The notes beneath the pieces are model-generated. The model searched no databases. It was not told the DNA's origin and worked only from the letters and a program-made list of their open reading frames with translations. From Rebecca billardiae RCC1528 (Eukaryota; Protista; Haptophyta): a DNA stretch of 64,000 bases. How positions within the stretch are numbered: the first letter of the stretch is position 1; every line of letters begins with the position of its first letter. The translations under genes were made by a program, and so were the position numbers. The DNA lies in NCBI GenBank assembly GCA_965240325.2, contig OZ251239.1:124001-188000 (forward strand), given 5' to 3'. This document shows positions 9,897 to 64,000 of the stretch, one piece after another.

Positions 9897-12424
9897 TCAA
9901 CCACCTGCCCACTCACTGCCAGACGAGTCGTCGTCCTCGACGTCGGATGTGTCGAGGCCCTTGCGCGCAGGCTTGGCCTTGCGTTTCTTCGTCGTCGCCG
10001 ACGGCTTCTGCTCACCGGTCGAGACGCGCCGCTTGGCGCTGGCGGAAGCCACGCGCCGATATCCATGCCGCGGTTGGAGGGGGGCGCGCCGATCAGCCAG
10101 GGAGGTCGACGCGCACGCGGGTGGACGGCATGTGAGCGCGCGCAGCGCAGCGCGGGCGGGCGGGCGCGCGGCGCAATGGCACCACATGGCGGGCGTGCGG
10201 GCGGCACACACCTGCTCGTGGGCTGCTTCGCCTTCGTCACGCGGCCTCCCTCGGAGGCCGGTCGGCCTCGCTTCGCGCCCGGCCGCTTGCCCGGCTCGGG
10301 CGACGCGAGCATGGCGCCTTCGTCCGCGACGTCGTCGTCGAGCAGCGCGTCGAGCTGCGCGCTCTGCGCGCGCGCGAGCTCGAGCGCGCGCGCGGCGCCT
10401 CCGGGGCTCGCAGGGCGAGGGCTGTGTGCGTCAGCGCCCGCGGCGAGGGCGGGGATGTCCGCGAGCTCGAGCTCGGCGTGGCCGGTCGGCGTGGCGGGCA
10501 TTGAGCGCGCGCCCTCGTTCGGGCTGAGGGCGTAGGCGTGGCAGCGCGCATCGCTCAGGCTGTAAAGCTCCTGCGCAGCGCGCACGGCGGGCGGCGCGGC
10601 GCGTGTCGGCGCACGCCGCGCGCGCGCGACGCGCGCGCGCACGGCCGCTGCCGAGGGCGCACCTTGAGGTAGCGGCGCACGCGCGCGACGATCGTCATCG
10701 CGGCGGCCTCGTCCGCGAGGCCGCGCAGCCGCGCAGCCGCGCGGCCGTCGCCGCCCTCGGCGGGCGCGCCCTGCTCGAGCGCGGCGCTGAGCGCGTCGAG
10801 CGCGGAGGCGCCGCGCACGCCGAGTGTGCGCGTCGCCGCCGCGACCAGCTGCAGCACCTCCTCCTCGCGGGCGAAGGGGAGCTCGACGAGCGCGCGCGCA
10901 CACCACGCGGCAAACGGCACGCGCGAGTGCGCCGCCTCCGCCTCCGCGTCCACGCGCGCCGCACCCGCGGGCTGCTGCGCCGTCGGCGGGGGCGCGGCGG
11001 CGGCGGCGCGCGCCGCGTCGGGCGCGAGGCCCGCCACAGCCGCGAGCAGAGCGGACGCCACCTCGCGCCTCTGCGGCGCGTGGCTGCCGAGCGCGCCGTA
11101 CAGCCGGCCGAAGGGCGCGGGCGCGCCGCCGCCCGCGGCCGCCTCGGCGCGCACCGGCTCAGTCGAGAGAGCGCCGCGCGCGCGCGCGTGCACGAACGCG
11201 CGCGCGATGCCCTCGGCGGCGCGGCTGGCGACGAGCGCGGGCTGCTGCTCGCACAGCACCGACACGGCGCGCTGCGCCTCGGCGCGCGTGCCGCCCGCCT
11301 CCGCCTCGCCCTCGAGCGCCATCAGCCAGGGCAGGCACACGTGCGGGTGCGCAACACCCTGCCGCAGCGCGCTCGCGAGCACGCCGACCGCCGCGGCCTG
11401 CACGCTGGGCTCCTTGTCCAGCGCGAGCTCGCACACGCGGGGCAAGTGCGTCTGCAGCACGCCGCCCGCGATCGCGCCCTCGTCCGACGCGCTCGCCGTC
11501 GCCGCCTCCGCCGCCGCCTTGGCGCTCGCCGCGCTGCCGCCGCTCGCGACCGCGGCGCGGCGCGCGGCGCGCACGCGCTCGCGCGCGCGCTCGTCGTCGG
11601 CACTGAGCAGCTCGGCGAAGTTCTTGAGCAGCTGCACGCGCAGCCGCCCGTCGACGCGCGCGTCGCCCAGCGCGCCGCCGATCAGCGGCGCGCAGTGCAT
11701 CAAGAAGCTCGGCCGGCGCACCCAGAGGAAGCCGAGCGCGCGCAGCGCGTGCAGCGACACCTGCAGCTTCGGGTGCTTGGCGTAGTGGTGCAGGCAGCGC
11801 AGCGCCTCCTCGTTGACCCTGCCGCGCGCGCAGAACGCGGGCGTGGGCGGCGGCTCGCCCCCCGCCGGCGCCGCCGCGTCGAAGTCGTGATACCGGCAGA
11901 GCAGCCCGAGCCCGAACGCGGCGCGCATCAGCGCCACCGCCCGCGGCTCGTCGAGTTGGGCCGCGCCCTTGCACCCGTCCAGGTAGCGCCAGAAGCGCTC
12001 GAGCACGTCGCAGAGCAGCCGCGCGCCGCCGAGCGAGGCGTCGCGCGCGGACGGGCCGCGCGGCGCGCCGCCGCCCAGCGCGGCCGACTCGCAGTGCACC
12101 GCCGCGCACAGCGCCTGGATCGCGGGCGGCAGCACGGCCGCGCCCTGCGTGAAGACGAGCGCTCCCAGGCACGTCTCCAGTCCGCGCAGCAGCGGCTCGG
12201 GCGGCCGGCGCAGCATTGGGAGGACATCGACGCACACGAGGGAGAGCGAGCGCAGCACGGGCGCGGGCTGGTCGGGGAGCAGGTAGCGGTGCAGCGCGTC
12301 GAGGTGCGGCACGAGCAGCGCCGGCTCCGCGTGCGCGAGCGCGCGCAGCAGCTCGGCGAGAGCAACGAGCCGTCGCTCGGCGGCCGCGGCCGGCGGCGCG
12401 GCCGAGCCAGTGGCCGCCTCCGCA

Positions 12425-12458
<34 letters not shown>

Positions 12459-15400
12459 GAGCGTCGTCGGCGGCGGCGGCGGTGCGCGCGGCCTGCTCGT
12501 CGAGGAAGTGGCTGACCAGCCCGTCCGCGAGCGCCTGCAGCTGCTCGGCGCCCGCCGCGGCGCTCGGCACGCCCGCGCCGCCCGCGGCCGCGTGCTCGAC
12601 CAGCGGCGGCAGCCATGTCTCGGGCGGCACGCGCGCTGCGGCCGTGATCAGCCGAGACACGCGCGCGCGCGCGCGGCGCGCCGCGGCGGCGTCGGCGCTC
12701 TCGGCGGCGTCGGCGGCGCGCGAGGCCGCGCCGCCGCCCTCCGCGCCCGCCTCGCGCCGCGCCGCCGCCGCCAGCTCGCCGCCGTCCAGCGCGTCCGCGT
12801 CCGCGGGCGCGTCGCCGAGCGCAAGCTCGCAGAGCGCGCGCAGCAGCAGCGCGCGCAGGCCTTCCTCATCGGTCACCTTGGCGAGCGCGCTGCCGAGCGT
12901 GCACAGCGCGTCGGCGACGAGGTCGTCGTCCGCGGGGTGCGCCGGCGGCTCCGCCGCGAGCAGCCGCGCCTCGCGCTGCAGCTGCGCGCCGCACACCGCG
13001 TGCAGCACCTTCACCACGCGCTTGCGCACAGACACGCCCACGTCCCGGATCCGCTCGGCGACCAGCCTGAGCTGCGCGGCGCTCGGCGCGCGCTCGGCGG
13101 CGGCGGCGGCGGAGTGGTGGCGGAGGACGTGGCGGCCGACGAGGTCGACGGCGGCCTCGCGCACCGAGACGGCGGCGTCCATCAGCCGGCTCTGCACCGC
13201 GGCGTGCACGCCCGCCGCGCCAAGCAGCTCGTCGTCGGCGTCGATCAGACTGCCGAGGGACTTGAGCGCGCGCGCGCGGCCCGCGGGCGTCGGGTCGCGC
13301 AGCGCGTGCAGCGTCGCGCGGAGGCAGACGTCGGCGAGCCTGGCGAGGCTCGAGCCAGCGGCGAGCGCGCGGCACGCGCGCCGCGTGCCGTCGAGCGAGA
13401 GCGTCGGCTCATCGCGCGCGCCGCCGCCGCCGCCCTCGCACACGAGCGCCCACTGCGCGCACAGCAGCCGGCACGCGCGCGCGTCGCCGGCCGCGGCCGC
13501 GTCGCAGTGCCACTCACAGAGCAGCGCGCGCGAGGCCGAGCGCGCGGCGCTGTCGTCGCCCTCGGCGCGCGCCTCGGCGTGCAGGTAGTTGAGCACGAGC
13601 TGCTGCAGCACCGACGTCTCCGCCACGTCCACCTCGCCCTCGCCACCCGCCTCCTCGTCGTCGCCGCCGCCGTCGGCGGCGGCGGCGGCGGCCGCGGCCG
13701 CGGCCGCGCCGCCACCCAGGGCGGCCGCGAGCGCGCGCTGCGCGCGCCGCGCGCGCGCGCGCTGCGCGCGCACGGCCTTGGAGACGATGCACGCGTCGCA
13801 CAGCCACACGTCGGGCATCGGCGCCGTCGGGTCCACGCCCACGCACGCGCCGTGGAACCAGCGGTGGCACCCGTCGCAGTCGAGCATGAACGCGCGCCGT
13901 CCCGCGGAAGTCTTGTAGAAGCCTCTGCCACACACGCAGCTCGAGTCCTCGCCCGCCGTGTCGGGCGCGGCGAGCGGGTCGAAGTCGGTCCGTGGCGAGG
14001 GGAAGCGCAGCGGCGCGTCGCGGTGCGCGCGCAGCTCCGCGTGCGCGTACGCGCCCACCTGCCCGAGCAGCTCGAGGCACTGGCTGCGCACCGCCGCCGA
14101 CTCCCGCGAGCCACTCTTGCCGGCCGGGCCGGCGCCGGCTGGCCCAAGCTGTGGGTCGGCGAGTGCGCGCTTGGCGAGGTGCTGCGTGAGGCGCACGAGG
14201 CAGAGGGCGGCGGCGGGCCACTGCGGCGTGTGCGCCACGAGGAGCAGGTCCTCCGTGAACCGCTCCAGCGCCAGCCGCAGCTCCGCCTCGCGCGAGCCGT
14301 CGCCGCCCGCCGCGCTCGGCGGCGCGTGGCAGCGCCCGTGCAGCGCGTGTACAAACGCGAACGCCCGCCCGGCGAGCTCGGCGCGGAACGGGTGGGCGGC
14401 GAGGGCCTGCGCGTCGGGGGCGGCGGGCGGCTCGTCGGCGGGGAGCGCCGCCGGCGCCTGCAGCAGCTGCAGCACGAGCCCGCTCACCATCTGCACCGAC
14501 GCGCCGCCGCCCGCGGCCGCGGGCGCGCGCGCGCCGCCCGAGCGCGCCGCGGCCGGCGCGGCGAGCGCTCCTGCCGGAAAGGTGCGCAGGTTGAGCTTGG
14601 ACTGCGCGGGCTTGAGCAGGATGGCGAGCACGTCCTCCCACATGAGCTCGCGCTGGCCCGCGTACCGCGTGTACAGCTCGACCGCCACGCCGATCGCCGG
14701 CAGCTGCAGCGCGGGCGCGCCCGCGAGGCAGCCCGCGCGCACGCACAGCGTCGCCAGCGAGGTGGCTGCGCCTTCCGAGAGGCCGCGCGTGCCGATCAGC
14801 GATCGCAGCGCGCCGAGGGCGCCGGCGACGCTGGAGACGAGGGGCGCGAGCGCCGCCGCGGGCACCGCGGGCGCGCTGGTCGGCGCCTTGACCACACCCT
14901 CCGCGCCGCCGCCGCCATCGGCGTCGGCGGCGGCCGCGGCGGCGGCGGCGGCGGCGCGCCCACGGCCGCGGCCGCGGCCGCGGCCGCGCGCTCCGCGCCC
15001 TCCGCGCCCGGGAGCGGGAGGCGTCGACGGCGCGTGCGGGCTCGAGGCGGCGGCGGCGGCGGCGGAGACGGCGGGGAGCGCGTTGCAGAGCACGCCCGAG
15101 CGGCCGAGCACCGCGCGCAGCGTGCTCACCACCTCGTCCAGCGCCTCCTCCGTGCACAGGTCCGGTGGGGCGTCCGGACTGCCGAGCAGGACCAGAAGCG
15201 CATGCAGCGCGCGCGCGCCCTCCGCGGCCGCGCGCGCGGCCGGCGCGGCGTGCGCCACGCCGGAGGCGGCGACGGCGGCCGGGAGGTCGACGTCGCGCGC
15301 GCTCGCCATCGTCGCCGAGAGCCTCTCCGCGAGCATCGTCAGCTCCGGCTCGGCCACGCGCTGCAGCGCCCCGGGCGCCTCCGCCAGTCGCTGCAGCTCG

Positions 15401-16513
15401 AGCAGAGCGCCGCCTGTCTCGCCGACGCTCAGCGGCGCGGGGTGCGCGCCGTCGGCGCCCGCGGGGTCGGAGGCGGCGGCGGCGGCGAGGAGCGCCTCGA
15501 GGCGCGCGACCGAGCGGTCGATGGCGCGCGCGCGCTCCGAGGCCGCGTCGGCCTGCGCGCCCGCGCCGCGCGCGCCGCCCTCCGCAGCCTGCGCGCTCGG
15601 CGCGCCGCCGTTCAGCGCCGCCTGCGGCGCGGCCGCGGCCCGCCTCGGCGCGCAGCCCTTGGCGCGCGCGGGCGGCGTGGCGGGCGGAGGCAGCGGCGAG
15701 GCCGCTGCGCTGGCGTGCACGCTCGGTGCCACGCTGGCGCTACCCGCGCCGCCTGCGCGTGCGAGCGCGGGCGCGGGCGCGGGCGCAGCGCACGGGCGGG
15801 GCAGCGTGCGCGTGCGCGCGCGCGCGCGCGCATGCGTGAGCGAGTGACGCAGGCGCGGGGCAGAGCGCGCCGCCTCGCGACGCTCAGCGCAGAGGCGCGC
15901 GGCGCGCGGGTGCACGCGCACCTCGACCCGGCACGGGCGACGCGCCCTGCGCCGCGTCCGTCCGGAACTTGTCCACGCCGGCGCGCGTGAGCGTCGTGGT
16001 GGTCGCGTCGTCCCAGAGCACGCGCACGCGCCCGCCCTCGAGCTCGGCCTCGACGGTGCCGTCGTGCACGCCGAAGCCGGGGAACCTGCGGCGCACGGGC
16101 GTGCCCACGAGCGAGCCCGACGCCGGCCCGCTGCCGCCGCCGCTCGTGCTCGGCGCGGCCGGCCGCGGCGGAGGCGGCTGCGGCTGCTGCGCGCGCGTGC
16201 CGCCCAACGCCTGCCGCAGCTGCGTGAGCGCGGCGGAGGCGGGTTCGTGCGCGGCGCGCGAGGCGCCACGCGGCGTGCTCGCGAGGGGCTTGGCACTCGC
16301 GCCGTTCGCCGCGTGCAGCGCGGCGAGCATGCACTCGAGCTGCGCCGGCGGCGCGAGCTCGGCGCCCGGCAGCGCCGAGACGAGCTTGGAAGCGCGCCCG
16401 TCCGCGTCGGTCGCGTGCGCGGCGAGCGTGCTGAGCGGCAGGCACTTGGCGAGGTTGGCGAGCGGGGCGGGCCCGGCGCACAGGGTCACGTCCGGCGCGC
16501 GTGCCTCCGCCAT
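9897..16513 (-). CDS. NIPBL: Cohesin loader SCC2/Nipped-B-like protein, multi-exon (introns ~15753-15921, ~10574-10662, ~10.0-10.2 kb)
   Basis: HEAT motifs RARALKSLGSLI, DAAVSVREAAVDLVG, RIRDVGVSVRKRVVK, LRQGVAHPHVCLPWLMAL and YLK/ELYSLSDARC. PHD finger CVC..MLDCDGCHRWFHGACVGV..WLCDAC. GT-AG junctions restore the frame. ATG at 16513. Confidence 0.9.
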
Positions 16514-55812: not shown

Positions 55813-58104
55813 GCCCGGGCCCGGCCGCGGCGTCACGCAGTCAGCACGGCTCACACTACGATGACCGGTTACTCAGCGGACTACCGGGAATCTGTCCGGT
55901 TGGACGTCGAGTTTCATTGCGGACTACGCGGCTGACCGCCCGACGATCGGCCGGCCCCGCGGCGGAGGCGGCAGCGGGCGCGGAGGCTGACCGGAGGCGC
56001 GGAGCGGGTCGGGCGCAGCTGACTCAGCAGCCTCCTCGATGACTCTCACGACGTACGGTCCTACTGGTCGATAACACGACTCTCACTTGGTCAGGCGACT
56101 GCTACTACAGTGAGCCGCGCGGGCCCGGGCTCGGACCGCGCGCACCGCCGGGCGCGGCTGCTGCCACAAGTCACGACTCAGCGCCGGACGATGACCGGGA
56201 CCGGGACTCAGTCCGACAGCTGCGTGGCAGGCCGTGACCGACGTGAACGGTGAATCCGACTCCGAGCTTTGAAGCACTTCATCACTGCTCGTCCGACTGG
56301 ATGGCGCGGCTGCTCGCTGCTCGTGCGCCGCACCGCCGCCACCGCCTCCGCCGCGCTCTCGTGCGCGGAGGCTTGGCGCCGAGTCCTTCGCGCGCGAGCT
56401 CGAGCTTGCACGCGCCTGGGACGCGCGCCCACACCCCGCACGTGTCACCTCGTGCGCAGGAGCCAGGTCCGCTTCGAGCCGCCCAAGCTCCTCCGCGCCT
56501 TCCTCGCGCGCGGCAGCGCGCTCGGCCACGTGCGCGCGCGCCTCACGCCGAGCAGCAGCGGCAAGCGCGAACGCAGCGGTTTGCCGAGCAGGCTTGCTCG
56601 CGGCGGCATCGGCCGAGGCTGCGCGCCACTTGGCCTCGGCCACGCCGAGCAGCACCCTACGTGCAGCCATCGTCTCGGCGGCCGCCGCCGTCCGTTCGGC
56701 TGCTGCAGCGTGCTCCGCGTGCAGCTGCTTCTCGAGTCTCGGCACGGCGCTCAGCTCGCAGCTCTTGCGCACGTTCGCCTCCGACAGTTCGGCAACGTGG
56801 ATCGCGAGCAGGTCGGCGCTGCCGTCCACGGCAGCAATGCTTGCCGCCGAGAGCTGCGTGCCGTGCGGCGGGCGCCGCGGCGCGGGCGGGCGGGTGGCGG
56901 GCGATGAGCGATGGGCCGGGCCAGCGATCGGCGTCTCGTCGACGAGTGCGGGCAGCTGGTGGCGAGCTCCGGCTTGCACGGGCAGCAGGGAGGTGGAAGG
57001 GTGAGGGCAGCGGGCAGTCGGCACGGCCAGGCGGCGGTAGTGACACGACGGCGGTCAACACGGAGGGGTCGAGCCGCGGGCACGTGGTCTCGGCAGCTGC
57101 CGCGCGGGCAGCTGGGTCATGCGGGGCGGCGCTGCAGGTTGCACCCGCCGTGTGAGGCGTCGAGCCGCATCCGCTCTGAGGGCTCGATCTGGGCGGTGGA
57201 CACGAACGCCGTAAGCGGAGTGCTGCAGGCGGGGCCGCGAGAGGCGGGGCCGCAACAACTTCCGCCGTTATCGCCGGGCGGCGACGCCTAGTCGCCGCCC
57301 TCCTCGCGCGCCATCGCAGTGATCTGACCCCACACGCCTGGCATCATCGCCTCGGAGAAGTGCTAGTGCCGCGCAGCTCCAAACTCGAGCGGCGTGCGTG
57401 CTCGGAGCAGCAGCCGGCTGCGGATCAGGCTTCAGTCGAATGCATACGCACCTGTGGCTGCCGTGCATGGCCTCCTCACCGAGGAAGAAGGGTGTTCTGT
57501 GGCCATCCATAAAAAAAGGTGCGCACTGGCGCCCGAGCCGCCCGCGCGGCACGCGACCTCAACTGCACCTGTTCCGATCTCGAGCTGTGGGCAGGGCGGG
57601 GTGTCTTGGATCGATGGGGAGACGCTCGGGGAAATTCGTCGGGGTAGTCTGGGACTGCGCGCGCACGCTCCCCGCCCTTCAGCGCGCCGCGCGTCGCCAT
57701 GCTGAATTTCCGCGAGCGGGCGGGTGCAGGGGGGGGCCCGTAACGACATCTTTTCCGAAATCTTGCGCTGTGTATATATATATAATATATACTCACTTCA
57801 ATCGATTCATATCATCACTACTCACTCACTTCAATCGCACGGGCGCGATGGGACTGTGTCATCATCTGTGATCTGGCTGACTGGCTGGCCCGCGGCCGCT
57901 GGCAGCAGCACCGGCACGCCTCTGACTGAGTCTGCGTCAGTGACTACTCTGCGCGCCGGCGGTCGACCGTCACTCACTATATAGTCACTTTCCGCGCGAT
58001 ATTTACACGGTTATTAGATGGCATCGGCAGCAGTGATGATGAAGCCCATCAGGAAGGCTACTATACTGCGCTAGCTGCTAGTATATTACTACGACAATTA
58101 CGTG

Positions 58105-59142
58105 TCAGCTGGCGGTCAGCACTGTTGCTGTGAGTCGCGTGATGGGCGAGTGCGGCGTGCTCGTGATCGCACGCGACGTGGGCTCGCGGAAGAAGCGCAC
58201 CAGCTCGTGCACGTGCGGCCGGTAGAAGGCATCAAGAGCCGACCGCTCTGCCGCACCGAGCGTCGACTTGACGCGCCCCCTCGTATTCAGGTGCGCGGCC
58301 TGCAGCAGCAGGCGCCGTATCCTCGAGCCGCTGCCTGCGCCGAGTGCATCGGCCGCGCCGATCGTGGCGAGCTCTCTCGCATGGTGAGTAACGCCGCGCG
58401 TGCCCGGCTTTGCGTGCATTGGGTGGCCGATGAAATGCGCGAGGTCGGCGAGCACCCGGTCGGTCTGGCGCAAATACCCGCTCAGCGTGACCACCGCCAG
58501 CTGTCTCGCCGAGAAGGCGCGCAGCCACGCGGCGAGCTGGGGCGCGTACATGCCGCCCACGAGCGCGTCGCCAAACGAGTGCCCGAGGTTGTTGCACTTC
58601 GAGCCCCACAGCTCGCCCGAGCTGACGGAGAGATTGTGCTGCGCGGCGCACGAGCGCATGCGACGGAGAGATTCGCGCACCCACACGTTCAAGCCGAGCT
58701 TGGCGTGCGCGAACTCCTTGCCGATGTGGTCGTACCACGAGCGCACGCGCTCCGTTGGCGAGCGCAGCAGCGCGATGATGCGCACCTGCTTGGCTGCGTG
58801 CGCCTGCACGTAGCTCGCGCGCGCGCGCGTCGCCGCCAGCTTGTGCTTCATGTAGTTCGGCGTCGCATCCATCGCGAACAGCACCGGCGTCGAGCCTACC
58901 GCCGGGCACGGCGGGTAGTGGGCCACGTAGTGTGCGAGGCCGTTGGAGTGGTGCTGATCGAAAAAGTGCTTCTCCTTGTGGTACATGGCGGGCTCGCCGT
59001 CGAGTGTGCGCGAGCCTGTCGCGCCGATCATCGTCTTGCGCATGTCCGAGAAGAGCGAGGTCGTGCCCGCCTTCTGGGCGCCGATCAGGAGCACTGTGGG
59101 CAGGATGTGCCCAAGCGCGCAGACCGTGTCGTGCGCCACCAT
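58105..59142 (-). CDS. PAPS-dependent sulfotransferase (HS3ST/NDST-like)
   Basis: 5'-PSB LPTVLLIGAQKAGTTSL, KEKHFFD, DATPNY, 3'-PB IIALLRSPTERVRSWY, C-terminal LDAFYRPH. Confidence 0.9.
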   Translation of the reverse strand: MVAHDTVCALGHILPTVLLIGAQKAGTTSLFSDMRKTMIGATGSRTLDGEPAMYHKEKHFFDQHHSNGLAHYVAHYPPCPAVGSTPVLFAMDATPNYMKHKLAATRARASYVQAHAAKQVRIIALLRSPTERVRSWYDHIGKEFAHAKLGLNVWVRESLRRMRSCAAQHNLSVSSGELWGSKCNNLGHSFGDALVGGMYAPQLAAWLRAFSARQLAVVTLSGYLRQTDRVLADLAHFIGHPMHAKPGTRGVTHHARELATIGAADALGAGSGSRIRRLLLQAAHLNTRGRVKSTLGAAERSALDAFYRPHVHELVRFFREPTSRAITSTPHSPITRLTATVLTAS

Positions 59143-59216
59143 GACTTTTACAACGGCCGAACGGTACCCCCATATATGCGGCGGCTGAATTCAGGTCGGT
59201 CTCCATTTGGTCCAAG

Positions 59217-61400
59217 ATGCCGATGCCGCGCTCGTCGAGCGCCCTCCGCCTCGCGGCCCTCGCGTGCGCGGTCGCCTCGCCCGTCGTGCACGCGTCGACG
59301 TCGACGCGCGTCACGGTGAGCGACGCCGCCGAGCTCGAGGCCGCGTTCGCCGCTCTGCCCTCCCTGACGCCGCCGGTGACGATCGAAATGAGCGCGGGCC
59401 AGTACGAGTTGAGCGAGGCGCTCCGCGGCAACACGAGCAAGGTCATCCTCGAGGGCGTCGGCGCGGTGGTGATCAAGCCGGCCTCTGGCAACCGCGCGCT
59501 CGTGCTCGACGGCGTCGACGACTGGCTCATCAAGGGCATCACGTTCACGGGCGCGAGCGTGAGCTCGGCCGACCTGGGCGGCGACAGGCCGGCGGGTGCC
59601 GCGGTGCTGCTGCAGAACTCGGCCGCCACGTTCGAGCGCGTCGAGCTGATCGGCACCGCCGACGTGTCGGCGTCCGGCGAGCGGGTGTCCGGCGCCATCG
59701 CGCTGCTGGGCCCGAGCATGGCCTGGTTCAGCCAGAGCAAGTTCACCGGCAACAGCTTGCTGGGCGACGGCGGTGTCTTCCGCGCGCAAGACAGCGCCAT
59801 GCTCAGCCTGGACACGTGCGAGTTCACGGGCAACGTGGCCCGACGGGCGGGCGGCGCCGTGTACGCCCGAGACAACGCCAACGTCGTGGTCAAGAGCTGC
59901 GCGTTCACGGGCAACACCGCCGACAGCGGCGGCGCGCTCTGGGCCGGGTACGACTCGCAGCTCTCGGCCGAGGGCAGCGCGTTCACCGGCAACAGGGCGA
60001 CCACGTCGAGCGGCGGCGCCGTGCGCGCGTACAACGACGCAAAGGTGACGATCCGCCGCTCGAGCTTCAGCGGGAACGTGGCGGGCAACGACGGCGGCGC
60101 CATCTTCGTGTGGAACAAGTGCGAGCTCACCGTCGAGGGCTGCACCTTCCGCGGCAACAAGGCGTACGACGAGGGCGGCGCGCTCGGCGCGTGGAACCGC
60201 GCCAAGGTGTCGGTCGAGTCGAGCGAGTTCGAGGGCAACAGCTGCACGTACGACAGCGGCATGTGCGGCGGCGCGGTCGTCTTCTGGAACGACGTCGTCG
60301 CCACGTTCACCGGGGTGAGCTTCGGCAACAACACGGCGCCAGGCAAGGGCGGCGCGATCGCGAATCGGAACGACGTCGTGCTGTCCCTCGACGACTGCCA
60401 GTTCGAGCGCAACACGGCGGGCACGGTCGGCGGCGCGGTCTCGACGGAGGACGAGGTGAAGCTGGACGTCGTGTCGTGCGAGTTCAACGAGAATGTCGCC
60501 GCCGAGACCGGCGGCGCGATCGCGCTGTCGGAGGAGTCGGAGGCGAGCCTGCGCAAGGCCAAGTTCACAAGCAACCGCGCAGGCGTGGGCGGCGGCGCCG
60601 TCGCGACGAGCGACACCGTGAAGCTCGCCTTCAGCCGGTGCAGCTTCAAGAAGAACGAGGTGCTCGAAGACCCGTGGGCCGAAGGCGGACGACGGCGCCG
60701 GCTGGGCGCGGAGGCGGACGGGGCGACGCGGCTCGCGGCCGCTGCGGACGAGCATGCCGCGGGCGTGGAGGGCGGCGGCGATGGCTCGCGCCGCCGGCTG
60801 CAGTCGACGGAGGGTGGCGGCGCGATGCTCCTCGGCTCGACCGAGACGTGGGAAAAGGACACCAGCGCCTTCAGCGCCAACTACGCGTACAACGGCTGCG
60901 ACGCCATCGAGACGCAGACGGACGGTCTCGACCCGACGAGCAACAAGACAATCTTGGCGGCAGACGTGTGCACCAACGCGGGCGCGGACGGCGGTGGCGG
61001 CGCGAGCTGGCACTGGCCGTGCGGCATGTGCATGCGCCACCGGTGCTCGCTCTGGGGCGCGAACAAGTGCGCCTCCCGCTGGGGCTTCAACGACCCGCAG
61101 GGCGTCGACAGTGACCTCTGCGCATGCGCGTGCTGCCGCCAGGCCTGCGCGCGCCCGAGGGGTTGCAGCGTCTCGCACCTCGAGCTCGACGAGCCGGCAG
61201 CGCGCGCATCCAGTGCGCGTGATGCGCTCGTGGTGGGCCCCGCGACACGTGAGAGTGAGCCTCCCATTGCAGCCGAAGCAAGAGCAACATGGGCGCCTGC
61301 GCCGCCGCCGATGGTGGCGGCTGTGGCGCTCGCAGTCGCGGCGTTCGCGCTGTCCGCCTGGCGACAACGATCTCGTCCCGCCGAGACGGCGCTCGTCTGA
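59217..61400 (+). CDS. Secreted/membrane-anchored Pmp-repeat (pectin-lyase-like beta-helix) protein
   Basis: Signal peptide, about 10 FxxN..GGA(I/L/V) repeats, Cys-rich domain, C-terminal hydrophobic helix MVAAVALAVAAFALSAW. Confidence 0.88.
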   Translation: MPMPRSSSALRLAALACAVASPVVHASTSTRVTVSDAAELEAAFAALPSLTPPVTIEMSAGQYELSEALRGNTSKVILEGVGAVVIKPASGNRALVLDGVDDWLIKGITFTGASVSSADLGGDRPAGAAVLLQNSAATFERVELIGTADVSASGERVSGAIALLGPSMAWFSQSKFTGNSLLGDGGVFRAQDSAMLSLDTCEFTGNVARRAGGAVYARDNANVVVKSCAFTGNTADSGGALWAGYDSQLSAEGSAFTGNRATTSSGGAVRAYNDAKVTIRRSSFSGNVAGNDGGAIFVWNKCELTVEGCTFRGNKAYDEGGALGAWNRAKVSVESSEFEGNSCTYDSGMCGGAVVFWNDVVATFTGVSFGNNTAPGKGGAIANRNDVVLSLDDCQFERNTAGTVGGAVSTEDEVKLDVVSCEFNENVAAETGGAIALSEESEASLRKAKFTSNRAGVGGGAVATSDTVKLAFSRCSFKKNEVLEDPWAEGGRRRRLGAEADGATRLAAAADEHAAGVEGGGDGSRRRLQSTEGGGAMLLGSTETWEKDTSAFSANYAYNGCDAIETQTDGLDPTSNKTILAADVCTNAGADGGGGASWHWPCGMCMRHRCSLWGANKCASRWGFNDPQGVDSDLCACACCRQACARPRGCSVSHLELDEPAARASSARDALVVGPATRESEPPIAAEARATWAPAPPPMVAAVALAVAAFALSAWRQRSRPAETALV

Positions 61401-61646
61401 CACCGTTTGAAACTGCTGTGAGGGCGACGCCGGCATGAAAGTTGAAGCCACAATCAACGTCGCGAGCGCTCGCTCCGCAACTTTGTAGGGTGCCCGTGCG
61501 GCGGCTTGGCGGCCGCTCGCCATTGGGCCTTGCCGTTGGGGTCGTGCGCCCGCCCGCCAGTGGCCTCCACACTCCACAGGCGAAATCCGGACGTGGGCCG
61601 AGTGATGAGAGCCGGAGAAGGCGGCTCGCGCGAAGACGACGACGCG

Positions 61647-64000
61647 ATGACGGGCATCGCGGCGAGGCTGTGGGCGGGCGCGCTCCCGCTGGCGGCGCGG
61701 TCGCTGCACCACCCCTTCGTGCTGCGCCTCGCCGGCGGCTCGCTCGAGCGCGCCTCCTTCCAGGCGTACGTCGCGCAGGACGCCTTCTTCCTCAAGGCCT
61801 TTGCGCAGGCGTACGCGCTCGCGCTCTCGCGCTCGACTGAGCTCGAGTCGATCGAGGAGCTCTCGTCGCTGATCGGCGGCGTGGTGGACGAGCTCAAGCT
61901 GCACCGCTCGTACGCGGCGAAGTGGGGCATCGACGTCGTCGACGTCCAGCCCAACCCGGCGACGAGCGCGTACACGCACTTCCTCCTCACGCTCGCGCGC
62001 GACGAGGACGTGCCCGTGGCGGTCGTGCTCGCGGCGATGACGCCGTGCATGCGGCTGTACGCGTACCTCGGCACGCAGCTGCGCGCCGCGTGCCCGGACG
62101 CGTCGCATGCGTACGCGGAGTGGCTCGACGCGTACGCCGCGCCCGAGTTCGGCGCGCTCGCCCGCCGCATCGAGGGGCTGCTCGACCGCGCGGCTGTCGG
62201 CGTGCCGCTCGAGCCGATGCGCGCTGCGTACGAGCGCGCGATGCAGCTCGAGCTCGACTTCTTCGACGCGCAGCCCGGCGTCGCGCCGGTGGCCGCGCTG
62301 CTCCCGCCCGGCCGCCGCGCGCTGCTCGCCGTCGACTTTGACGAGACCGTCTCCACCGCGCAGACGCTCGAGATCTTGGTCGAGCTCGCCGCGCGCGCGG
62401 CCGAGGCGGCGCGCGCGCGCGGCGACGCGCGCGGCGTGCCCGGCGGCGCGCAGGGCGTGCGCGAGAGGTGGGCGGCGCTGGCCGAGCCGTTCGCCGCGGC
62501 GTACGCCGCCGCGTTCGACGACGCGCTCGAGCTGCTGCAGCGCGGCGGCGGCGGCAGCGGCGCCGCGCCCGTCGAGCCGGGCGGCGTCGTACTGGGCGTC
62601 GCCGCGCTCGAGCGCTTCGTGTCCGACTTCTCGGCGTTCGAGACGTCGGCGGTGGCGCCCGTCTCGTTCGCGCGCGTGCTGCAGGGGATCCCGGAGCCCG
62701 AGCTCGTCACGACGGGCGCGCAGATGGCCGAGCTCCGCCCGGGCTTCGCGCCGCTCGTGCGTGCCCTCCTCTCGGACGGCCAGCTGACTAAGCTGCATGT
62801 GATCTCAGTCAACTGGGCGTCGCAGCTCGTCTTTGGCTCGGTGGCGCGCGCGCTGGGCGGCGCGGGGCGCGGCGTGCTCAGCGTGCACGCCAACCCGATG
62901 CCGGTGGCCCCGCCCCCCGGCGGCGGCGGCGGGCCGCCGCTCACCACCGGCGAGATCGCCACCGAGGGCGGCATCCACTCCGCGGTGGACAAGCGGAGCA
63001 TCTTTAGACAGCTGCTGCGCGCCGAGGCCGAGGCCGAGGCCGAGGCGGGCGGCGGCGGCGGCGGCGGTGGCGGCGGGGCGGCTCTGAGCGTGTACGTGGG
63101 GGACTCGCTGACGGACATCTGCGCGCTGCTCGAGGCGGACGTGGGCGTGCTGATCGGCTCGTCCGGCTCCGTGCGCAAGGCGCTGCGCGCGCTGGGCGTG
63201 TGCGTGCGGCCCATCGTGGGCGCGGCCGTGCGCGCGGCCGCCGCCGCGGACGACGGCGCGCCGTGGCGGCCCAGCCCGGCCTACCGCCCGGGGCAGGGCG
63301 AGGCTCGGCCGCCCGCCGAGCCCGCGACCGTGTACGAGGTGTCGAGCTGGCACGAGCTCCACGCGTGCCTGCGCGGCTGGCGCGCGCTCGCCGAGCTGAG
63401 CGGACGGCCCCTGTTTGTCCTCCCGGGTGCGGGCGCGGGCTTGGAGGGCGGCGGCGCCGAGCTGGGCGGCGCGGCGCCCGGCGGCGGCGCGCCGAGCGGC
63501 GCGGCGGCGCGGCCGCGCGGCAGCACCACGCTGCCCGTCGTGCTCTCGATCGCCGGCTCGGACTCGGGCGGCGGCGCGGGGATCCAGGCGGACCTCAAGA
63601 CGTGCGCCGCGCTCGGCGTGTTTGGCACGACCGCACTCGCTGGGCTGACCGCTCAGAACACGGCCGGCGTGCACGCGATCGAGGCGGTGAGCGCCGAGTT
63701 CGTCACGGCGCAGCTGGAGGCGGTGCTCGGCGACTTTGACGTCGGCGCGATCAAGACGGGGATGCTGCCCTCCGCGGCGGTCATCCGCGCGGTGTGCGCC
63801 GCGCTGGACGCACACGCCGCGCGCGTCGGCCGCTGCCCACCTCTGGTCGTCGACCCCGTCATGATCGCCGCCTCCGGCGCGACCCTCGCCGGCGCGGAGG
63901 CCATGGGCGCCCTCCGGCAGGAGCTGCTGCCGCGCGCGACCGTGCTCACGCCCAACCTGCCCGAGGCGGCGGCGCTGCTCGGCCTCGAGGCGCACGAGGT
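61647..64000 (+). CDS. Thiamine-salvage fusion TenA - HAD phosphatase - ThiD (HMP/HMP-P kinase), 3'-truncated by window
   Basis: Not in the ORF track because there is no stop before the edge. Hand translation from ATG 61647: [44 protein letters not shown] (TenA); [33 protein letters not shown] (HAD); [46 protein letters not shown] (ThiD). All in the same frame. Confidence 0.93.

Follow-up and report, generated by a model that had tools for sequence, protein, structure and literature searches.

A predicted TenA-HAD-ThiD fusion gene of thiamin salvage, probably continuing into ThiE, in the haptophyte Rebecca billardiae RCC1528

Reading frame and coding potential

The window, a stretch of 64,000 nucleotides on contig OZ251239.1 of Rebecca billardiae RCC1528, ends within a predicted gene of thiamin (vitamin B1) metabolism. 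The partial coding sequence at 61647..64000 (+) joins a TenA domain, a HAD phosphatase and the first part of a ThiD kinase in this order; a ThiE domain probably follows. Its 3′ end lies outside the window. Translation of 61647-64000 (+) gave 784 codons with zero stops, and the frame continues past the window edge. An initial annotation, made from the letters and a list of open reading frames (ORFs), had described a single frame of at least 784 codons, which was confirmed. It had also described the frame as missed by that list. The frame is indeed absent from it, for the trivial reason that ORFs running off the end of the source are omitted.

The G+C content of the region is 70-80%, and chance open frames run long for this reason. 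From base composition, the chance of 784 codons staying open is ~1e-4. The G+C content at codon positions 1, 2 and 3 of the frame amounts to 78, 56 and 96%, respectively. G+C at the third position (GC3), calculated per 25-codon window, is 0.84-1.00 throughout, the interdomain linker included, compared with 0.71 in the upstream intergenic DNA. By these three measures, the 784-codon frame is not a chance product. Fused relatives are colinear with it at 99-100% coverage. Antisense "shadow" ORFs over real genes occur at 59148-62798 (-, 1216 aa), 61454-63214 (-, 586 aa) and 62805-63995 (-, 396 aa), owing to a GC3 near 96%. In this genome, genes are not reliably recognized by ORF length alone.

The nearest upstream in-frame stop is located at 61443-61445, and in-frame ATG codons are present at 61605 and 61647. 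With a start at 61605, the protein would gain 14 acidic residues. The closest relatives, four environmental proteins (P0001-P0004), start in the alignment at a Met equivalent to 61647, which is used here as residue 1. The 5′ intergenic or leader region covers 61401..61646 (+, GC3 0.71), the preceding gene ending at 61400; it is too short to accommodate a targeting peptide. In positions 56000-64000, a search against Rfam at a permissive E-value detected neither a thiamin pyrophosphate (TPP) riboswitch nor any other Rfam family.

Domain structure

The TenA domain (thiaminase II or aminopyrimidine aminohydrolase) extends over 61686..62270 (+). Pfam TENA_THI-4 (PF03070) matches residues 14-208 with an E-value of 3.5e-34, the NCBIfam family salvage_TenA with 4.9e-28, and solved TenA structures were matched at 2e-16. 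A TPCMRLY motif at 62040..62060 (aa 132-138) contains the active-site Cys134 (codon 62046-62048), identified by structure alignment and conservation. In the solved TenA proteins 2gm7 and 3mvu, the Cys of the LPC/APC motif stands at the position aligned to Cys134, a residue unchanged in all nine aligned sequences. The catalytic-type Cys in this motif had been recognized in the initial annotation. The presence of an active-site Cys defines the TENA_C class (PMC5635689). By this criterion, the predicted domain is a TenA_C.

The middle region at 62319..63377 (+, aa ~225-577) is a HAD phosphatase of subclass IB with an enlarged helical cap, of the TH2/PALE1 type, and possesses all four catalytic motifs. 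Motif I, DFDET, is encoded at 62334..62348 (aa 230-234). It includes the nucleophile D230, the acid/base residue D232 and T234, and is invariant in both alignments (A1 and A2). The motif II region, ISVNWAS, lies at 62802..62822; its S387 is invariant in A1 and, in the alignment to SerB, falls on the strand of motif II. Motif III (DK, 62985..62999) comprises the invariant residues D448 and K449, the latter aligned to the Lys of SerB. Motif IV, GDSLTD, is found at 63099..63116 (aa 485-490), where G485, D486, S487 and D490 are invariant; D486 and D490 are its acidic residues. Motifs I and IV are thus present as originally noticed, and the domain coordinates given then are right to within a few codons.

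The assignment rests on colinearity with TH2, the motifs, a family profile and a structural model. TenA and the middle part together align with plant TH2 across 91-92% of the length, at E-values of 1e-49 to 1e-51. A profile of 17 family members matches the phosphoserine phosphatase SerB with an E-value of 5.8e-11, and 13 of the 17 individually match Pfam HAD. NCBIfam gave a single weak match in the region, of 13 bits, to an MtnX-like HAD-IB family at motif IV. An AlphaFold2 (AF2) model of the domain reached a predicted local distance difference test score (pLDDT) of 87 and a predicted template modelling score (pTM) of 0.89. Its top Foldseek matches are all capped HAD phosphatases, namely phosphoserine phosphatase/SerB, cytosolic 5′-nucleotidase III and MtnX.

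Low-complexity loops are inserted in the HAD domain at 62544-62585 (Gly-rich), 62910-62939 (Pro/Gly) and 63021-63077 ((AE)4A, then G10), all on the plus strand and coding. They form low-confidence loops in the AF2 model and are shorter or missing in relatives. Replication slippage is their likely origin.

ThiD, the kinase for hydroxymethylpyrimidine (HMP) and its phosphate (HMP-P), begins at 63531 as annotated and is cut by the window edge. The segment 63531..63998 (+) encodes the N-terminal ~60% of the domain. Pfam Phos_pyr_kin (PF08543) matches aa 639-782 with an E-value of 2.1e-49, covering profile positions 1-138 of 246, and TIGR00097 matches with 8.8e-54.

Linker and gene continuity

HAD and ThiD are connected by a Gly/Ala/Pro-rich linker of 52 residues (63378..63530, +), which is coding, with a GC3 of 0.88-1.00 and no stop. 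The linker contains no in-frame GT..AG segment in which GC3 drops, as would be expected of an intron. The only in-frame GT..AG segment with a GC3 below 0.80, 48 nt long, was rejected as an intron, as it sits within the conserved HAD motif II. The linkers of relatives differ in length and sequence, and the frame is open in all of them, from 54% down to 35% identity. An MMETSP ORF of 1132 aa (P0128) comprises TenA, a HAD domain that exceeds the Pfam threshold, then ThiD and an entire ThiE. It shares a 90%-identity cluster with a UniRef entry of Tetraselmis sp. GSL018 (UniRef100_A0A061SA06). The mRNA-like contig L003 (3766 nt) carries a sole ORF of 1071 aa with the same domains, continuous across the junction of HAD and ThiD. 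Three more proteins, from a search with the junction piece in which bacterial ThiD dominated, span this junction.

Two neighbouring genes, a TH2-like TenA-HAD and a TH1-like ThiD-ThiE, could appear fused because stops are rare at 75-80% G+C; the linker would then be intergenic DNA or an intron. The low-complexity Gly/Ala/Pro composition of the linker suits this explanation, but its GC3 is coding-like, whereas true intergenic DNA has 0.71. Long chance ORFs are common in the region, the antisense frames of 1216, 586 and 396 aa being examples, yet the frame across the junction stays open over divergent linkers in all relatives. TH2 and TH1 are separate genes in land plants (PMC8331165, PMC7868968), while the ThiD part in the window opens without an ATG or a targeting sequence. 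RNA sequencing runs for R. billardiae are not listed; the transcript-derived ORFs of Tetraselmis and L003 are unbroken at the junction, which is also crossed by the three additional proteins. Two separate genes are considered very improbable. For the fusion in R. billardiae, a single mRNA is a strong inference rather than an observation, the continuous transcripts being those of relatives. The absence of stops, the coding-like GC3 of the linker and the colinear relatives bear out the order TenA-HAD-ThiD in one uninterrupted frame, as first proposed.

ThiE beyond the window edge

In the environmental proteins P0001-P0004 (~54% identity, on contigs with 69-70% G+C), ThiE stands directly after ThiD. 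Their prokaryote-style gene calls end at ThiE profile position ~70. ORFs further downstream supply ThiE profile positions 99-180 and 124-180, and contigs L001 and L002 hold later ThiE exons. At 5870-6260 of L002, two short introns, ending ...gcag, split ThiE. The truncation of ThiE at ~70 and the junk C-terminus of P0001-P0004 are explained by such introns, which defeat prokaryote-style gene calling. ThiE follows ThiD in every readable member of the clade to which the window protein belongs. By analogy, ThiE probably follows just past the window edge in R. billardiae, a possibility already raised in the initial annotation.

Comparison with TH2, TH1, THI20 and bacterial fusions

Plant TH2/PALE1 proteins consist of TenA and HAD (PMC7868968). 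The TH2 proteins of Drosera, Coffea and Camellia match the window protein with 29-30% identity at 73-92% coverage (E-values 1e-49 to 1e-51). In the ESM Atlas, the only matches were plant TH2 clusters, with scores below the threshold. In land-plant TH2/PALE1 (At5g32470; rice OsPALE1), TenA_C precedes HAD, and the catalytic motifs are common to both proteins. The plant protein ends after HAD and has an organellar targeting peptide, whereas the window chain runs on into ThiD and probably lacks such a peptide. The full-length colinearity with plant TH2, together with the ThiD match, supports the proposal of a TH2-like TenA-HAD module joined to ThiD.

TH1 of plants and diatoms has ThiD followed by ThiE, as in the clade of the window protein. 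In contrast to the window protein, neither TenA nor HAD stands ahead of ThiD in TH1, and the plant enzyme is plastidial. Yeast and fungal THI20/THI21 and the haptophyte "THI20" resemble the window protein in joining an HMP kinase to a Cys-type TenA. Comparators of this type were the PDB match 3rm5, Calcidiscus P0025 and the entries in Table S1d of PMC5635689. In THI20/THI21, ThiD comes first and TenA last, HAD and ThiE are absent and the length is ~520-550 aa; the order in the window is the opposite, with HAD in between. Actinobacterial ThiE-ThiD-TenA proteins (NCBIfam PRK09517; Clavibacter P0009) have three enzyme domains in common with the window chain. However, their order is reversed and HAD is missing; the cut-off of the family is 761 bits, and the window protein scores 235.

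Distribution and phylogeny

Deposited TenA-HAD-ThiD-ThiE proteins of 1046-1300 aa cover 99-100% of the 784-residue query with 35-41% identity. They originate from Tetraselmis, Scenedesmus, Raphidocelis, Chlamydomonas incerta, C. schloesseri, Edaphochlamys, Gonium, Volvox, Pleodorina and Haematococcus. Named examples are Tetraselmis striata TSEL_002612, Scenedesmus sp. PABB004 "TH1", and proteins of Raphidocelis subcapitata, Gonium pectorale and Volvox carteri (VOLCADRAFT_89047). The four-domain order is therefore known from at least 10 green-algal genomes, in addition to transcripts. The architecture had initially been regarded as unrecognized, a view that does not hold; at database level, it is already documented as common. 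The window protein is a divergent addition to an existing, little-discussed fusion type and not a new invention. It shares the domain order, the TenA Cys and the HAD motifs with the green-algal four-domain proteins. It differs in lacking an N-terminal extension, whereas TenA begins at residue 104-141 in Tetraselmis, and in its extra Gly/Ala-rich loops.

A maximum-likelihood tree calculated for the TenA+HAD part places the window protein and P0001-P0004 in their own clade with 100/100 support. This clade is separate from both the chlorophyte clade and land-plant TH2; the relations among the clades are not resolved by the tree. Two additional clades were obtained, P0044/P0060 and P0035/P0039. 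P0044 has all four domains, and P0060 has the same order with the start of ThiE only. P0035 contains TenA and ThiD without a Pfam HAD match, and in the precomputed domains of P0039 only TenA and ThiD are listed.

The fusion is annotated unevenly in databases. The Trebouxia models P0006 and P0005 look truncated or mis-spliced; that of P0006 covers ThiD profile positions 1-171, followed by low-complexity junk. The Tetraselmis striata model P0026 ends 33 positions into ThiD. A full-text literature search, beyond whose reach Zallot 2014, Mimura 2016 and Hasnain 2016 lay, found no description of the four-domain fusion. In a haptophyte survey, TENA_C, THID, THIE and TH1 carry separate transcript IDs, and the only fusions reported are of the THI20-type ThiD-TenA (PMC5635689). 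A survey of TenA from 2023 mentions no fusion (PMC10470507).

Proposed function and location

In plants, TH1 (ThiD-ThiE) acts as HMP-P kinase and thiamin monophosphate (TMP) synthase, forming TMP. TH2 dephosphorylates TMP to thiamin, and thiamin pyrophosphokinase (TPK) then makes the cofactor (PMC8331165, PMC7868968). Eukaryotes need this dephosphorylation before TPK makes the cofactor (PMC8331165, PMC7868968). By analogy with the characterized families, four consecutive reactions would take place on the fusion protein. TenA would convert the salvaged aminopyrimidine AmMP into HMP. ThiD would phosphorylate HMP to HMP-P and further to HMP pyrophosphate (HMP-PP). ThiE would couple HMP-PP to thiazole phosphate, yielding TMP. 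Finally, the HAD domain would release free thiamin from TMP, and a separate pyrophosphokinase would act next. The four domains form a consecutive pathway in this scheme, since the substrate of the plant TH2 phosphatase, TMP, is what ThiE forms. The HAD phosphatase is best read as the final step after ThiE, not as an antagonist of the kinase. For the same reason, the futile cycle between kinase and phosphatase, raised as a question in the initial annotation, is probably misplaced as a frame for the fusion.

A different role of the HAD domain within a real fusion has to be weighed. The domain may act on another thiamin-related phosphate (HMP-P, HMP-PP, TPP or hydroxyethylthiazole phosphate, HET-P), working as a valve for regulation or damage control, or its main role may be that of a structural spacer. 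In the HAD region, the identity with plant TH2 is just 26-30%, although orthology is backed by full-length colinearity and the tree. The closest solved structures, phosphoserine phosphatases and 5′-nucleotidases, are silent on the substrate, whereas fusion to ThiE, the enzyme that makes TMP, is what one would expect of a TMP phosphatase. Lineage-specific inserts occur in the large cap that sets specificity, but every catalytic residue is retained across phylogenetically very distant lineages, which speaks against a spacer. Plant th2 mutants are leaky, and other phosphatases can act on TMP (PMC7868968). Overall, a HAD domain with a role other than TMP hydrolysis appears unlikely, and hydrolysis of TMP is the preferred assignment.

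TenA begins at residue 14, the relatives share the start Met and their upstream intergenic gaps are short (280-340 bp). A targeting peptide is unlikely on these grounds. As an N-terminal extension is missing, the fusion protein is predicted to be cytosolic. The Tetraselmis proteins, in contrast, carry 100-140 additional residues at the N-terminus.

The favoured reading is one nuclear gene encoding one polypeptide, in which a TH2-type module is joined to a TH1-type module of ThiD and then ThiE; its probability is estimated at about 0.85. Several points weigh against it. The HAD domain of the window, searched alone against Pfam, gave no match reaching the threshold. The window stops short of the 3′ part of ThiD and of the whole of the presumed ThiE, and a metagenome scan yielded no near-identical contig covering the sequence past 64000. 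The missing RNA runs have been mentioned. For the HAD substrate, TMP as opposed to HMP-P or HMP-PP, the basis is plant TH2, with ~30% identity, and a small chance remains that a separate 5′ exon provides a targeting signal.

Neighbouring genes

Upstream of the thiamin gene, at a distance of 246 bp, a 727-aa ORF (59217-61400, +) encodes a right-handed beta-helix with Chlamydia-PMP-type repeats (PF13229, E-value 9e-21; PF02415, 1e-17). A 345-aa ORF on the minus strand (58105-59142) contains a sulfotransferase domain (PF00685, 1.5e-6). The 1976-aa open frame at 10558-16485 (-) corresponds to a cohesin loader of the Nipped-B/SCC2 type with a PHD finger, which confirms a eukaryotic nuclear context. 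It was the only Pfam match among eight other high-GC3 ORFs searched. The contigs of the two closest environmental relatives, L001 (1-9899) and L002 (1-6672), share a gene order of L-type lectin (-), orotidine monophosphate (OMP) decarboxylase (+) and thiamin fusion gene (+). Neither the lectin nor the OMP decarboxylase was found upstream of the fusion in the window.

Implications

Many marine algae satisfy their demand for vitamin B1 with pyrimidine fragments that they scavenge. In the fusion, a single chain would carry the hydrolase of salvage, the two kinase steps, the TMP phosphatase that ends the route and, probably, the coupling enzyme. Expression and location would be shared by these steps, with the cytosol as the probable site, whereas plants split them between plastid and mitochondrion. 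The practical value of the fusion is modest and consists in a compact enzyme for the engineering of B1 pathways and in a better marker gene.

A more far-reaching proposal is that the clade of the window protein is non-green and carries the route from AmMP to thiamin on one cytosolic polypeptide, derived either from a very old fused ancestor, which land plants later split, or by acquisition from a green alga. This proposal is tentative and rather doubtful at present. If it is true, haptophyte surveys listing TENA_C, THID and THIE separately (PMC5635689) counted fragments of one gene, and the fusion would be a test case, provided by nature, for the channelling of substrates on the way from AmMP to thiamin. 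Plankton inventories that score TenA_C, ThiD and ThiE apart may likewise count the same gene repeatedly. The fusion is spread widely, and without having drawn comment, over chlorophytes, the clade of the window protein and at least two further clades. This distribution lends support to placing the TH2 HAD domain in the thiamin pathway, and it prompts the question whether TH1 and TH2 of land plants came from the split of a fused ancestor.

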